Part shown: positions 8,468 through 41,372 of the stretch, one piece after another | Layout of the letters: the number at the start of each line of letters is the position of its first letter | Numbering within the stretch: position 1 is the stretch's first letter | NCBI RefSeq assembly: GCF_001194135.2 | Contig: NC_068994.1 | Span: forward strand, 38,481,877 to 38,525,425 | Source of the DNA: Octopus bimaculoides | Lineage: Eukaryota | DNA: 43,549 nt | Direction: 5' to 3' | The notes under the pieces: model-generated | The model's database searches: none | What the model saw: only the letters and a program-made list of their open reading frames with translations | What the model was told of the DNA's origin: nothing | Position numbers and translations under genes: made by a program

Positions 8468-8537
8468 CAGCAGTTGTCAATTGTTGCTGTCCTGTTTCAA
8501 TGTTCTGGTCACAAAGTTATGGTAGTAGCAGATTTCT
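8468..8537 (-). other. Predicted non-coding first exon of copy A
   Basis: Donor CTG|gtaagc at 8468/8467 at the same position as in B, C and D. No ATG inside. The 5' end is inferred from a TCAGA initiator-like motif. Confidence 0.6.
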
Positions 8538-8564
8538 GAGTAGTTAGGTATGTGATAGTGTCAT

Positions 8565-8714
8565 GTAGTTCTATCAAGTTGGTTGTGTAGTATGTAATGT
8601 GTGTTGTAGCCAATGACAAGCTGTCTATTATTCCAATGCAAGGAAACGGAAATACAACCTCCAGTTCTTGCAGTAAATGATGGGCTGACTCACAAAACAT
8701 TTCACTTAAACACA
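8565..8714 (-). promoter_or_regulatory. Conserved promoter block of copy A (TGACTCA 8686-8692, GGAAACGGAAAT 8642-8653, CCAAT 8633, AGCCAATGAC 8608-8617)
   Basis: Indel-free block present once per gene, just upstream of the first donor. Motifs match AP-1, ETS-like and NF-Y consensus sequences. Confidence 0.7.
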
Positions 8715-9617
8715 CTAATGTATTGATACACACATATACATGTATATAAGTGGAAGTTTTGGGAATGTTTAAGGCAAAGATATATATATATATATATATA
8801 TATATATGAACTTTTAAAAATATACTATATATTCACTTCAAAGAAAAAAAGTTATTTTCTAACTTTAATAAAAGTTTCAAAACATTTTTATGTTCACTGT
8901 CACAACTTTTCCTATTGGATTAACAAATACCATACTAAGAGAATCACAATTTAAGTTACTAGAATAATATTTTAAATAGTTAATTAATTACTTGTGAAAT
9001 TATTAAGCTGATTTGAAAATACGAAATTGTGGCTCCAAATAATAATGATCATCAGCATATCAGTTGTGAAGGTATTCTGACCAATACATTTAAAATATAA
9101 TTGAATTTTATAACATCGGCATATAAATCTTGCATTATAAGTGAACTGAATTCTTTACTAATATATTCATATATCATAGTAATGTAGGTGAGCTAACAGA
9201 GGTTATTTTCTATTTATTTTATCAGATAACCATTCATGCATATTTTATTATATGCTACTTTTGAATTACTACATCTATTTTCCAGAAAAAGGACACATAT
9301 CTGGGGGCCTTTAACATATATATTTCCCCTAGAAATTTTAATCATATACATGGCTACATGTTTGTTCAGCTAACCTAAATAGATTCCAGCTAGCTATTTT
9401 ACAGATCACTTCAAGCAGAATTGTATCACTTACAGCCAGCATTTTGGTCAGCTTATTAATTATGCTTTTCATAATTCATGGATATAAATGGATTTATTGC
9501 AGATAAAAAATAAATAAGAATAAAAGTGTTTGATTTGATGAATAACTTCATCTAAACATGTATATGAATATGCATATTTAAAAAATATGAAAACGTTATG
9601 TAACTTGTATAGTAAGG

Positions 9618-9830
9618 ATTGGGAACTGGCAGAATCGTTAGTGCACCAGACAAAATAGTCACTAGCATTTCTTCTGATGCTTTGCATTCTGAGTTCAAAT
9701 GTAATTGAGGTCGATATTGTCTTCATTCCTTTTTGTGCTAATACAATAAAGTACCAGTCAAATACTGGGCAATATAATCAGCTTGCCTTTCCTTCATAAT
9801 TGCTGATTTTGTGCCAAAATTAGAAACAAA
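9618..9830 (+). mobile_element. Older tRNA-derived SINE copy (same family as 35064-35480)
   Basis: ctggcagaatcgttag ... ttctgagttcaaat ... gaggtcga ... aaagtaccagt. Confidence 0.65.
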
Positions 9831-10139
9831 TATAAAATTTCTAAACATTATACTCTGAAATATTTCTAACTAAACATGAATATTAATATACATTATAATA
9901 AGTCGTTTATACTTTCATAAAAAAATATACTTTGTAATATAATAATTTTACCTTTATATATGATAATCAAATTAAACTCCTTTATGTGATAAGTTGAAAA
10001 AGAGCATGAGTATTGAATGGCTAAATCCACTCTGGTAAAATTTGAACTCAGGACGCAAAGATCAAATAGTATCAGCTATTCAATCAGGCATCATACTGGT
10101 TCAACATCTTCCTACCATTGGTTTCTAAATGTTTTAGCA

Positions 10140-10462
10140 TTAATTATGTGGTGTAGATAGAGGAGACACCTGAGATAATGAAGGTACCATTGGTAGTGTT
10201 GTAACTTTAGGTACAGCTGGTAGAGGTGGTTTACAATTTGAAGTAAATTCACTTGTCATTGGTACTAAAGATGGTTGTTCGGTTATGTTAGATGTGGTCC
10301 TAGTTATAGTCAAAGGTATTTGGTCAGGATAACAGGAAGTGTTATTATCGACATTAGGTTGATAGTGATATCCATATTTGTTATCTCCCCTTGATCTGTT
10401 GAGTGTATGTGAAAGTTGATTTCTCCTATTCCATGTCTGATCACTTTGGTAACGACACAGAT
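10140..10462 (-). CDS. Protocadherin copy B, terminal coding exon
   Basis: Acceptor acttccag|AT at 10462. Hand translation DLCRYQSDQTWNRRNQL...KPPLPAVPKV...PLSTPHN is open to TAA at 10142-10140. 323 nt. Confidence 0.9.
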
Positions 10463-38907: not shown

Positions 38908-39551
38908 NNNNNNNNNNNNNNNNNNNNNNNNNNNNNNNNNNNNNNNNNNNNNNNNNNNNNNNNNNNNNNNNNNNNNNNNNNNNNNNNNNNNNNNNNNNNN
39001 NNNNNNNNNNNNNNNNNNNNNNNNNNNNNNNNNNNNNNNNNNNNNNNNNNNNNNNNNNNNNNNNNNNNNNNNNNNNNNNNNNNNNNNNNNNNNNNNNNNN
39101 NNNNNNNNNNNNNNNNNNNNNNNNNNNNNNNNNNNNNNNNNNNNNNNNNNNNNNNNNNNNNNNNNNNNNNNNNNNNNNNNNNNNNNNNNNNNNNNNNNNN
39201 NNNNNNNNNNNNNNNNNNNNNNNNNNNNNNNNNNNNNNNNNNNNNNNNNNNNNNNNNNNNNNNNNNNNNNNNNNNNNNNNNNNNNNNNNNNNNNNNNNNN
39301 NNNNNNNNNNNNNNNNNNNNNNNNNNNNNNNNNNNNNNNNNNNNNNNNNNNNNNNNNNNNNNNNNNNNNNNNNNNNNNNNNNNNNNNNNNNNNNNNNNNN
39401 NNNNNNNNNNNNNNNNNNNNNNNNNNNNNNNNNNNNNNNNNNNNNNNNNNNNNNNNNNNNNNNNNNNNNNNNNNNNNNNNNNNNNNNNNNNNNNNNNNNN
39501 NNNNNNNNNNNNNNNNNNNNNNNNNNNNNNNNNNNNNNNNNNNNNNNNNNN

Positions 39552-39915
39552 GTCCCACTGTGTGGCACCTTGGTCAAGTCTCTTCTATTACAGTCTAACT
39601 GAACACTTGTGAAAGTATTTGAGTATTTGGTAGATGGAAAGAGAAAGCCGTCCAGTGCGTGTTTGTGTGTATGCATATGTATGTGTGTGTGCATGCCTGC
39701 ATGCATGTGTGTGTGTGTATCTTTGTGATTGTCTGCCACCACTGCTTGACAACTGGTATTGTTTTGTGTAAAGTCTCTGAAACTTAGCAGTTTGACAAAA
39801 GAGACCGATAGCATAAGCATCGAGCTTAAAAACTAAGTACTGTAGTCGATTTATTCAATTAAACCCTTCAAAGTGGTGCCCCAGCATGGTCACAGTCCAA
39901 TGACTGAAGCAAGTC
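39552..39915 (+). mobile_element. tRNA-derived SINE (family of 2407-3182), 5' end in gap
   Basis: gtcccactgtgtggcaccttggtcaagt...gcttgacaactgg...aaaagagaccgatag...ccagcatggtcacagtccaatgactgaagcaagt. Confidence 0.7.
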
Positions 39916-40409
39916 AAAAAAAAAAAAAAGGTGGGGGATATGACAGAGAGAGAAGGGGAAGATAAATACAAAATACGTACATAGCTATGTTATTCTTAGT
40001 TACCACATACCTCTTGCAATATATTCTATAATATATTATTTACACTTCTGACCTGATAAAAACAATGCATGTACACACACATATACTTTACTTTCAAAAT
40101 ATGCCCAAAATAATGCTGATGTTTTTAATATAACAACCTTTTATTGTGAGTTTTCAGAGTGGGAAATTGTTGTACAGAAAATTTTGTGGTATTCGTTCCT
40201 GCTCTATGTAACCTTTGTTCAAATCTCATAATGATCAACTTCAACTTTTATTTTTTCAGAGTCGTTAATTAAAGTACAATTTCAGCATTGGATTGATCTT
40301 TCTTCCCCATCTTTTTGATACTCACTTGTCTCTATGATAGATCCCTAATAAACGGTTTCAAGATTACATCGAAAATTTCATATCTACACTTATGGTAGTT
40401 ATGCTGCAT

Positions 40410-40660
40410 AACTCAACTTCTCTAGATACATGCCTAGCAAGAACGATCAAACCTATGATTCACAGCATTGACGTTAAGAACATCATATTTTCTTATAGAA
40501 GATTTGAAAAAATACACTGTTATGTGACATTCCATTTCTAAAAACTGCAGGATACGAATCGAGAGAGATTTGGCTGTTATCTCTAACAGGTCAAGCAACG
40601 TCGTTAAAAAAAAAAAACTTCCTCATTAGTGCGTTAAGAGTAACCTCCCTTCCTAATAAC
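40410..40660 (+). mobile_element. Interspersed repeat in intron 1 of copy E
   Basis: Close homologue of 15525-15745 (gagagagatttggctgttatctctaacaggtcaagc...ttaagagtaacctccc). Confidence 0.55.
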
Positions 40661-41222
40661 ACTGCAAAGTCGCTCATTCATAAAATGAACCATTCTAAAG
40701 AAAATAGAAAACTATTTCACGATATAGAGCAAAAACTTGATAAACAATGCAACTAATATAATCTACATCCTGTCATTATCATAATTATATCCAATCATTN
40801 NNNNNNNNNNNNNNNNNNNNNNNNNNNNNNNNNNNNNNNNNNNNNNNNNNNNNNNNNNNNNNNNNNNNNNNNNNNNNNNNNNNNNNNNNNNNNNNNNNNN
40901 NNNNNNNNNNNNNNNNNNNNNNNNNNNNNNNNNNNNNNNNNNNNNNNNNNNNNNNNNNNNNNNNNNNNNNNNNNNNNNNNNNNNNNNNNNNNNNNNNNNN
41001 NNNNNNNNNNNNNNNNNNNNNNNNNNNNNNNNNNNNNNNNNNNNNNNNNNNNNNNNNNNNNNNNNNNNNNNNNNNNNNNNNNNNNNNNNNNNNNNNNNNN
41101 NNNNNNNNNNNNNAATAGTTGTTAGTTGTTTATATTGTTGTTAAAGTACTGTTTCAGTCTTCTGGTCACAAAGTTGTAATAGTGGCAGTAGTTCTGAGTA
41201 GTTTGGTATGTAACAGTGTTAT

Positions 41223-41372
41223 GTAGTTCTATCAAGTTGGTTGTGTAGTATGTAATGTGTGTTATAGCCAATGACAAGCTGTCTATTATTCCAATGCAAG
41301 GAAACGGAAATACAACCTCCAGTTCTTGCAGTAAATGATGGGCTGACTCACAAAATATTTCACTTAGACACA
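41223..41372 (-). promoter_or_regulatory. Conserved promoter block of copy E
   Basis: AGCCAATGAC 41266, GGAAACGGAAAT, TGACTCA 41344-41350. TCAGA at 41195. The first-exon donor presumably lies in the gap ending at 41113. Confidence 0.7.

Follow-up and report, generated by a model that had tools for sequence, protein, structure and literature searches.

What is the short non-coding block that stands once before each gene of a tandem octopod protocadherin (Pcdh) array, and does it correspond to the conserved sequence element (CSE) of the vertebrate Pcdh clusters? Octopus protocadherin genes number roughly 150-170, and we found no promoter element described for them in the literature. In the window, by which we mean the whole 43,549-nt stretch of DNA analysed, the protocadherin genes A to E are read on the minus strand with Pfam Cadherin matches at E=1e-50 to 1e-64, and exon 4 of a sixth gene, F, was found by tblastn at 43201-42875 (minus strand). 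The coding part of gene A (108..6364, minus strand), identified by tblastn with O. vulgaris P0002 and by Pfam Cadherin, consists of exon 2 (6364 to ~3883, interrupted by a gap at 4235-4713), exon 3 (3568-3419), and exon 4 (434 to ~108), all on the minus strand, and tblastn recovered the same three coding exons in each of genes B-E. Exon 2 of gene A starts at 6355..6364 (minus strand) with the acceptor TTTCAG/ATTCAAA (the slash marks the splice junction), followed by the ATG at 6357; the ATGs of genes B, C, and D are located at 14928, 22412, and 30798 on the same strand, and that of gene E falls within a gap (38908-39551). The acceptor before the ATG is conserved, 7 nt away in Argonauta and 34 nt away in O. 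bimaculoides and O. vulgaris. Intron 1 spans 6365..8467 (minus strand) in gene A and is ~1.1-1.5 kb long in genes B-D, with a paralog identity of 30-55%, and no alignment of it could be obtained between species. Each gene is thus a complete unit with a non-coding exon 1, a 1-3 kb intron, a 2.4-kb exon 2, and its own exons 3 and 4; the last two were found separately in every gene by tblastn, and shared constant exons were absent.

The block is a 94-nt, indel-free core (TGTGAGTCAGCC...TTGTCATTGGCTACAACAC), and its five copies lie, like the genes, on the minus strand. With an nhmmer profile, copy A was located at 8601..8694 (E=1.3e-31), copy B at 16359..16452 (E=1.6e-31), copy C at 23646..23739 (E=4e-30), copy D at 32426..32519 (E=1.8e-30), and copy E at 41259..41352 (E=5.3e-31). 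An earlier note on this DNA had described a ~150-bp non-coding block occurring once per gene with fixed motif spacing, and this description held in 5/5 window copies. There is one block per gene, in sense orientation throughout, just upstream of the predicted non-coding first exon, which is defined directly downstream of the block by a conserved donor and acceptor. In gene A, the rest of the putative promoter and exon 1 occupy 8468..8600 (minus strand) and end at the donor CTG/GTAAGC. Exon 1 ends at 16218, 23517, and 32290 in genes B, C, and D, respectively, and the donor (T/G)GGTAAG(T/C)A was kept in 14/14 readable copies, the exon 1 end and donor of gene E falling in a gap (40800-41113). The distance from the block to the exon 1 donor was 144-156 nt in the window and 144-190 nt across the full set of copies and species. 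The ATG, by contrast, lay a variable 1.2 to 3.3 kb away with intron 1 intervening, indicating that the block is fixed relative to the donor and not to the ATG.

The spacing within the block was the same in all window copies. AGCCAATGAC was found exactly at 8608, 16366, 23653, 32433, and 41266 (plus strand), and allowing ≤1 mismatch gave 8 matches versus 1.76 expected, a number reached in 0/100 shuffles. From this anchor, GGAAACGGAAAT was located at +34 and TGACTCA at +78, and CTACTCA(G/A) was present on the minus strand at anchor minus 71, each in 5/5 window copies. The GTAAG donor followed 70, 78, 66, and 73 nt past CTACTCA(G/A) in genes A, B, C, and D, in agreement with the 66-78 nt beyond TCAG/TCAA given in the earlier note. 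Because the copies are duplicates, the equal spacing represents the absence of indels only and not five independent events.

In O. bimaculoides, O. vulgaris, and Argonauta hians, every gene of the orthologous array was likewise found to carry a single copy of the block. The five window copies and 10 copies from the other arrays, counted as four octopod species, were aligned with 65/94 columns invariant and 0 indels. Core identity to the window was 0.93 in O. bimaculoides, 0.92 in O. vulgaris, and 0.88 in Argonauta, above the values of 0.78, 0.77, and 0.68 at four-fold degenerate sites, and the 100 nt upstream of the block had a between-species identity of 0.43-0.50. These results indicate that the block is under purifying selection and has not merely been homogenised. 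Among the five window repeat units, pairwise identity was maximal (94%) over 8598-8698, was 73% in the upstream flank, and dropped from 81% to 53% in exon 1; the claim that the block is better conserved than the adjacent spacer was thus upheld, and between species its conservation was far above that of neutral sequence. Within the large coding exon, the 3' part reached 91-97% identity among window paralogs and was as well conserved as the block or better. Similarity stopped sharply ~10 nt upstream of TGAGTCA and decayed with indels downstream of the core. Outside the core, exon 1 has taken up indels as well as a (TAC)n microsatellite; the core contains neither. In each repeat unit, the parts alignable to all three other species were limited to exons 2-4 and the block together with exon 1. 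Core identity was 0.92-0.99 within a species and 0.88-0.93 between species, and several species-specific substitutions were common to paralogs (ATTTAC in 5/5 window copies; GCATCAAC and TTACTTGGGAACAATACAC in Argonauta copies), indicating that the uniformity within a species is owed in part to concerted evolution or lineage-specific duplication.

The nhmmer profile gave 15 hits with E <= 1e-29, all upstream of subfamily genes and in sense orientation. The search covered ~350 kb of cephalopod sequence beyond the window, of which ~220 kb was other Pcdh loci, and no significant hit was obtained elsewhere in it (best E ~0.9); copies outside subfamily promoters accordingly numbered 0 in the ~350 kb searched. 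The block was absent at five other octopod Pcdh loci (L004, L005, L007, L008, and L009) comprising 8 genes and including a 4-gene tandem array. Among the loci searched, only one subfamily of ~4-6 genes carries the block. Since the element is absent from the other octopod Pcdh loci searched, protocadherin regulation in octopods is probably subfamily-specific rather than under one pan-family element.

The motifs in the core were named by consensus matching from general knowledge, under which almost any 94-nt sequence fits some factor motif. The AP-1-like, GGAA, and CCAAT motifs singled out in the earlier note coincide with invariant runs. TGAGTCA (TRE) is located at 8686..8692 in copy A and at 16444, 23731, 32511, and 41344 in copies B-E (minus strand), at the same offset in all copies, and was intact in 14/15 copies, one O. 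bimaculoides copy reading TGAGGCA. With its 3' GC flank, present in 14/15 copies (the exception being Obi_25737 with TGAGTCAACC), it forms GCTGACTCA on the plus strand, which we take to be a half-MARE or NF-E2-type bZIP site. It lies exactly 77 nt upstream of CATTGGCT in 5/5 window copies and in 9/10 copies from other species. ATTTCCGTTTCC, at 8642..8653 in copy A and at 16400, 23687, 32467, and 41300 in copies B-E (minus strand), contains two GGAA cores on the plus strand, and its TTCCGTTTCCTT was invariant in 15/15 copies and among the longest invariant runs. The ETS context CGGAA(G/A)T is present as A(C/T)TTCCGTTTCC, but the factor class that may act at this site is ambiguous, being ETS-like and also fitting GAAANNGAAA (IRF-like). 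The only CpG of each core lies within TTCCGTTTCC and is invariant. A CCAAT box in reverse orientation, GTCATTGGCT, is located at 8608..8617 in copy A and at 16366, 23653, 32433, and 41266 in copies B-E (minus strand). TTGTCATTGGCTA, the CCAAT box with NF-Y-type flanks, was invariant in 15/15 copies and again among the longest invariant runs, and TAGCCAATGAC, invariant in 15/15 copies from four species, fits RRCCAATSR, the NF-Y-preferred flanks of the CCAAT pentamer. At least two further stretches, ATTAACTGCA and AACTGGAGGCTGTA, are constrained and match no named factor. No coding signal was observed in the block on either strand.

Taken together, the block probably serves a single octopod-specific subfamily of protocadherins as proximal promoter and cis-regulatory module. 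Tandem duplication would have copied the 94-nt core along with the genes, and purifying selection at the DNA level would then have maintained it as a rigidly spaced array of predicted factor-binding sites: a bZIP site of the AP-1 or CNC/small-Maf type (TGAGTCA with the GC flank), a double GGAA site that is ETS-like and possibly IRF-like, and an NF-Y-type CCAAT box, together with the constrained ATTAACTGCA and AACTGGAGGCTGTA. CCAAT boxes are typically found at -60 to -100 from the start site, and the donor at 144-190 nt past the block is compatible with such a placement; from the sequence we infer promoter activity, the bound factors, and a transcription start most likely some tens of nucleotides downstream of the CCAAT box. 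The candidate start that the earlier note had proposed for gene A, 8537, lies inside 8468..8600 and is a guess, and the candidate start motif TCAG is conserved in 11 Octopus-type copies but not in Argonauta. Such a module would confer one basic expression programme common to all paralogs, and small copy differences, such as CGGAAGT versus CGGAAAT or the broken TRE in one O. bimaculoides copy, could tune single genes. Judged on position and conservation, the block is most likely a family-specific conserved module of this kind, a shared promoter switch of a small tandem family. As a candidate promoter it is deeply conserved and delimited precisely to 94 nt, and it offers named sites that can be mutated as well as natural variants among the copies.

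It is unlikely, although conceivable, that transcription instead begins ahead of TGAGTCA or in an exon still further upstream, and that the block, being transcribed, acts at the RNA level as a 5'UTR element, for example in translation control or localisation. Its position <= ~240 nt upstream of the conserved donor would allow it to be part of exon 1; the core lacks ATG on its sense strand, as suits a leader, and a conserved AG is present ~12 nt upstream of the core. The folding results point the other way: the RNAalifold covariation term was +0.15 with a compensatory change in 1/24 predicted pairs, the stability was unremarkable (single-sequence z = -1.55; 13/200 shuffles fold as well), and no Rfam family was matched at gathering score. 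A structured non-coding RNA was rejected on the same covariation, z, and Rfam results. In addition, the invariant runs are classic motifs of double-stranded DNA with the CCAAT box reversed, and the indels and microsatellite that the rest of exon 1 tolerates are missing from the core. The subfamily contigs in Logan were all genomic.

The earlier note had gone further and regarded the block as a candidate for the cephalopod equivalent of the vertebrate Pcdh CSE. Its recognition of one non-coding block per gene stands, whereas the equation with the CSE does not. As in vertebrate clustered Pcdh, a short conserved element is present once per tandem protocadherin promoter, and neither its orientation nor its placement with respect to the promoter varies among the copies. 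The vertebrate CSE is characterised by a CGCT box and a CTCF-binding site (PMC7811963), but the octopus block is unrelated in sequence: the CTCF consensus CCASYAGRKGGCRSY at <=3 mismatches gave 15 matches in the window and 0 inside any core, and no CGCT box was found in the cores. The vertebrate element occurs in nearly all cluster members, the octopus block in one subfamily of ~4-6 genes, where an intron of variable length (1-3 kb) stands between it and the ATG; vertebrate clusters splice variable exons to shared constant exons, whereas the octopus genes own their 3' exons. Failing every testable feature, the block is not a counterpart of the CTCF-bound vertebrate element, and the octopus array, in which a CTCF-type element and shared constant exons are absent, is not built like the vertebrate clusters.

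Two looser analogies with the vertebrate system were also weighed. We consider it very unlikely that the near-identical bZIP/ETS/NF-Y promoters compete for one input such that one or few of the 4-6 paralogs are expressed per neuron, with the ETS/TRE copy differences or the single invariant CpG biasing or locking the choice; if true, this would amount to a convergence in mechanism on the vertebrate clustered protocadherins, reached without CTCF. That the block is a functional analogue of the CSE, recruiting an architectural protein (CTCF or another) and looping to a shared enhancer for one-of-N stochastic expression, receives still less credence from us. A near-identical element per tandem paralog in a single orientation and the single invariant CpG of the core would suit such a role, and CTCF motifs are found in cephalopods at domain boundaries and loop anchors (PMC13652810). 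Against it stand the absence of CTCF-like motif and CGCT from every core, the restriction to one subfamily, and the complete gene units. Moreover, octopus promoters carry scant or no methylation (5mC), and neuronal and cell-surface genes belong to the unmethylated class, making the methylation gating of the vertebrate system unlikely in octopus (PMC9476566). In O. vulgaris, ~19 protocadherins are expressed per cell, some in all cell types and some specific (PMC9712504).

We also attach little probability to the block being a 3'UTR or termination element of the upstream gene, or an intergenic insulator or enhancer rather than a promoter. It lies only ~1.5 kb downstream of the preceding gene's stop codon; however, the spacing between the block and the exon 1 donor of the following gene is limited to 144-190 nt in every copy and species, the stretch from the upstream stop codon to the block cannot be aligned between species, and the motifs present are of the kind typical for proximal promoters. 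It is highly improbable that recent duplication or gene conversion keeps the copies alike without function, as the paralog-wide species-specific substitutions, the single clade of the Argonauta paralogs, and the similarly uniform exon 2 3' part might suggest: conversion cannot account for between-species conservation, since core divergence is 0.07-0.12 versus 0.22-0.32 at four-fold sites with unalignable flanks, and identity between species nearly matches that within them. An equally improbable origin is a dispersed repeat or transposable element fragment, near the genes by chance or co-opted, which the repeat-rich cephalopod genomes and the repeat-like look of other alignable window segments might favour, but 15/15 profile hits stand in sense before subfamily genes with none significant elsewhere in the ~350 kb searched, terminal repeats are absent, the similarity boundary is sharp, and an exact-pattern search of metagenome contigs gave 0 matches.

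As a predicted proximal promoter, the block resembles CCAAT/NF-Y-dependent RNA polymerase II promoters in its invariant CCAAT pentamer with RRCCAATSR flanks, located <= ~150 nt from the end of the first exon, in the adjoining predicted partner-factor sites (bZIP, ETS), and in apparently having no conserved TATA box. It differs in that constraint spans almost the whole 94 nt, beyond the motif cores. In this respect it recalls the interferon-beta enhancer, a rigid composite element of the enhanceosome type, which likewise shows near-every-base conservation, tolerates no indel, and combines bZIP and GAAANNGAAA-like sites in a short element; factor set and biology differ, and the analogy may extend to architecture only. 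In the shortened Dscam arrays of chelicerates, variable cassettes join shared downstream exons, unlike the octopus genes, which are complete units. Those arrays, too, are invertebrate arrays of cell-recognition genes produced by tandem duplication, with a promoter for each unit. They are described as resembling vertebrate clustered protocadherins in organisation and as using alternative promoter choice (PMC6339937).

The window contains 12 assembly gaps, of which 0/12 touch a block core, and the copies from other species are derived from chromosome-scale assemblies, so the block pattern is not an artefact of the gappy window scaffold. Apart from those mentioned above, gaps lie inside exon 2 of gene B (12976-13203), gene C (19948-20613), and gene D (28278-28873), within intron 3 of gene D (26609-27300), and adjoining the end of gene C exon 4 (17942-18140). 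Gap lengths disagree with the ortholog: the gene B gap is written as 228 N although 105 residues (315 nt) are lost there, and its two flanks are in different frames. The gap at 29425-29434 is spurious, because both of its flanks encode the same PPLTVEKQFSMLVTD. Other window segments that align between species resemble repeat fragments.

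The large open reading frames of the window (G+C content, 32%; 12 assembly gaps) all lie on the minus strand, and cadherin repeats were identified in them (Pfam Cadherin, E = 1e-50 to 1e-64). Their nearest proteins are protocadherins of Octopus bimaculoides, O. vulgaris, and O. sinensis (74–77% identity) and of Argonauta hians (69–71%). When the O. vulgaris ortholog P0002 was mapped onto the window, five complete tandem genes (A to E) and the final exon of a sixth (F) were identified, each gene having a large exon of ~2.4 kb, then one of 150 nt, and a final exon of ~330 nt. The array consists of whole genes in tandem, not of variable exons located 5′ of shared constant exons. 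A conserved acceptor directly precedes the start codon of the window genes (TTTCAG followed by ATTCAAA-ATG), the acceptor-to-ATG distance being 7 nt in Argonauta and 34 nt in O. bimaculoides and O. vulgaris; therefore, a non-coding first exon lies further upstream in every gene. The subfamily has about 4–6 tandem genes per species, and its cytoplasmic tail matched only Octopus and Argonauta, together with two Logan contigs from another octopod. Both contigs match genomic sequence collinearly through the introns and are therefore not transcripts. A search with an N-terminal 110-residue profile for RNA-derived Logan contigs with a 5′UTR gave a single, unrelated match.

Public gene models of the orthologous arrays of Argonauta (L002, 17838–23929) and O. 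vulgaris (L003, 19247–26620) fuse adjacent array genes into products of 1906 and 1897 residues, with tail exons 3–4 annotated separately as "uncharacterized proteins" (P0122–P0133). Some other O. bimaculoides protocadherin models are ~100 kb long (locus L004 on CM046614.1, and also protein P0019), very unlike the compact 7–9 kb genes of the window array. In the L004 model, a large exon at 10001–12439 is joined to a 3′ exon at 95920–96279, 84 kb downstream.

The earlier note had described a non-coding block present once per gene with fixed internal spacing, and both observations were reproduced. AGCCAATGAC occurs exactly at 8608, 16366, 23653, 32433, and 41266, and each of the five window copies has GGAAACGGAAAT at +34 and TGACTCA at +78. 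On the gene strand, TGAGTCA comes first, followed by ATTTCCGTTTCC, GTCATTGGCT, CTACTCA(G/A), and GGTAAG; the donor is 144–156 nt downstream of the CCAAT box. This equal spacing does not represent five independent coincidences, because the copies are duplicates without indels. When the repeat units were aligned, pairwise identity was 94% in the block and 73% upstream of it, fell from 81% to 53% in exon 1, and was 30–55% in intron 1. The five blocks are untouched by any gap; the donor had been visible only in genes A–D because a gap at 40800–41113 removes the end of exon 1 in gene E. In several copies, the block is bounded by low-complexity sequence, such as the (TA)n and CA/TA-rich sequence directly upstream of the core at 8723–8810, and a (GA)n run is located in intron 1 of gene A (8340–8420).

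The window was compared with the orthologous arrays of O. bimaculoides (L001; CM046614.1, 38,421,496–38,447,752), Argonauta hians (L002; BAAFZT010000037.1, 29,166,228–29,190,156), and O. vulgaris (L003; OX597827.1, 6,998,905–7,025,524). All three contain the block once per gene in sense orientation, which provided 10 further copies and extended the observation to four species, with the window counted as the fourth source. The spacing from TGAGTCA to CATTGGCT is exactly 77 nt in 9 of these 10 copies. Alignment of the 15 copies defined a 94-nt core, TGTGAGTCAGCCCATCATTAACTGCAAGAACTGGAGGCTGTAYTTCCGTTTCCTTGCATTGGAATAATAGACAGCTTGTCATTGGCTACAACAC, with 65 invariant columns and no indels. Similarity ends abruptly ~10 nt before TGAGTCA; downstream of the core it decays, with indels, and is regained at the donor (T/G)GGTAAG(T/C)A. 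In Argonauta exon 1, the indel-free core is immediately followed by a (TAC)n microsatellite whose length varies (L002, about 7060–7100, 14980–15030, and 23255–23300).

Identity between the window and O. bimaculoides was 0.93 in the core, 0.78 at four-fold degenerate sites of exon 2, and 0.48 in the 100 nt upstream. The corresponding values were 0.92, 0.77, and 0.50 for O. vulgaris and 0.88, 0.68, and 0.43 for Argonauta. Thus, the core has evolved at about one third of the rate of synonymous sites. Furthermore, when the whole window was searched against the three loci by blastn, exons 2–4 and the block together with exon 1 were the only parts that could be aligned to all three in every repeat unit, and the block remained better conserved than the adjacent spacer once aligned, as the earlier note had proposed. 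Pure gene conversion was ruled out as the cause of this conservation, since the block and exon 1 are alignable across species and the spacer is not. In the 15-copy alignment, species-specific substitutions were common to the paralogs of one species, and the Argonauta paralogs formed one clade. Judging from this pattern, conversion or lineage-specific duplication does contribute to the likeness within species.

From these comparisons, the block is most likely a proximal promoter module conserved within one protocadherin subfamily that is specific to octopods. The two longest invariant runs are TTCCGTTTCCTT, with two GGAA cores, and TTGTCATTGGCTA, which contains a CCAAT box flanked in exact agreement with RRCCAATSR. 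A TRE, TGAGTCA, is intact in 14 of the 15 copies and, with its GC flank, is a half-MARE or NF-E2-type site. TTCCGTTTCCTT is ETS-like as CGGAAGT or CGGAAAT and also fits GAAANNGAAA. The factor names for the TGAGTCA, GGAA, and CCAAT sites are those we presume from consensus knowledge. Two further constrained stretches, ATTAACTGCA and AACTGGAGGCTGTA, match no obvious factor. Nearly every base of the core is constrained and no indel is tolerated, which suggests that factors would bind it tightly packed or cooperatively and not at isolated sites. The candidate start motif noticed previously, TCA(G/A), is retained by the 11 Octopus-type copies but not by those of Argonauta. Three elements were rejected as core features: a second CCAAT box (GCATTGGAAT), which Argonauta and two of the O. 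bimaculoides copies do not preserve, and the TATA-like AATAATAG and a MEF2-like half-site between the CCAAT boxes, neither of which is preserved in Argonauta. The ETS site is CGGAAGT in some copies and species and CGGAAAT in others. Two O. bimaculoides cores (L001, 18356–18449 and 25658–25751) are also altered, one having a broken TRE (TGAGGCA) and the other lacking the GC flank (TGAGTCAACC).

A search with the 94-nt profile recovered the 15 copies at E ≤ 1e-29; elsewhere, the best value was about 0.9, which is not significant. The profile did not find the block in the 116-kb O. bimaculoides locus L004, in L007, or in the Argonauta loci L005, L008, and L009. L004, L005, L007, and L008 contain one gene each, and L009 is a four-gene tandem array of another subfamily. 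By this measure, the block is not a general protocadherin element. No conserved TGAGTCA/GGAA/CCAAT arrangement was found in L009, whose paralogs are 88–92% identical over most of their intergenic DNA; no footprint is visible there because this identity extends almost throughout. A metagenome scan for TTCCGTTTCCTT-N20-TTGTCATTGGCTA gave no match.

The proposal that the block is the cephalopod counterpart of the vertebrate conserved sequence element (CSE) was not supported, as none of the CSE features that could be tested was found. The CSE carries a CGCT box, is bound by CTCF, and is gated by CpG methylation; nearly all clustered protocadherins have it at a similar distance from the start codon (PMC7811963). 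The CTCF consensus, allowing up to three mismatches, matched none of the cores, and the CGCT box is absent. This is a fair test because cephalopod domain boundaries and loop anchors carry CTCF motifs (PMC13652810). In addition, octopus promoters have little or no methylation (PMC9476566), and ~19 protocadherins are expressed per cell in O. vulgaris, a number of them in every cell type and others in particular types (PMC9712504). What is left of the analogy is therefore a set of tandem paralogs with a common promoter element, the expected product of tandem duplication under selection. CTCF-consensus matches in the window totaled 15 against 7 expected, an excess inflated by paralogous copies. 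Among the closer matches are those at 22362–22376 (three mismatches) and 30751–30765 (two) on the plus strand and at 39555–39569 (two); the first two lie within the region of exon 2 that encodes the signal peptide in genes C and D, in antisense orientation, and do not recur in all genes.

A structured RNA was rejected on an RNAalifold covariation term of +0.15, a compensatory change in 1 of 24 predicted pairs, and a z-score of −1.55, and no Rfam match or tRNA was found in the block. A coding block was dismissed, as no ATG occurs on the sense strand of the core and the open stretch antisense to it (MTSCLLFQCKETEIQPPVLAVNDGLTH) is not coding-like, with 13, 6, and 8 variable sites at codon positions 1, 2, and 3, a stop codon in one copy, and an open stretch as long in 76% of shuffles. 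The promoter reading is well supported by sequence comparison, and the block would be a new example of an already known kind of element, the family-specific conserved proximal promoter. Literature searches found no earlier description of the element.

Gaps in the large coding exon (exon 2; 4235–4713, 12976–13203, 19948–20613, 28278–28873, 36982–37417, and 38908–39551) fall in parts 91–97% identical among paralogs, a pattern typical of short-read collapse. Gap lengths are estimates only and disagree with the ortholog; gene B lacks 105 residues (315 nt) where the gap has 228 N, and the flanks on the two sides are in different frames. Within 29380–29480, in exon 2 of gene D, PPLTVEKQFSMLVTD is encoded on either side of the 10-N gap at 29425–29434, which is therefore spurious; the ends of the contigs overlap there, and the gap and one ~57-nt copy are an assembly artefact. 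Among paralogs, the 3′ part of the large coding exon is 91–97% identical and the 5′ part only 57–65%, a gradient reminiscent of vertebrate clustered protocadherins, whose ectodomains are homogenised near the membrane and diversified distally.
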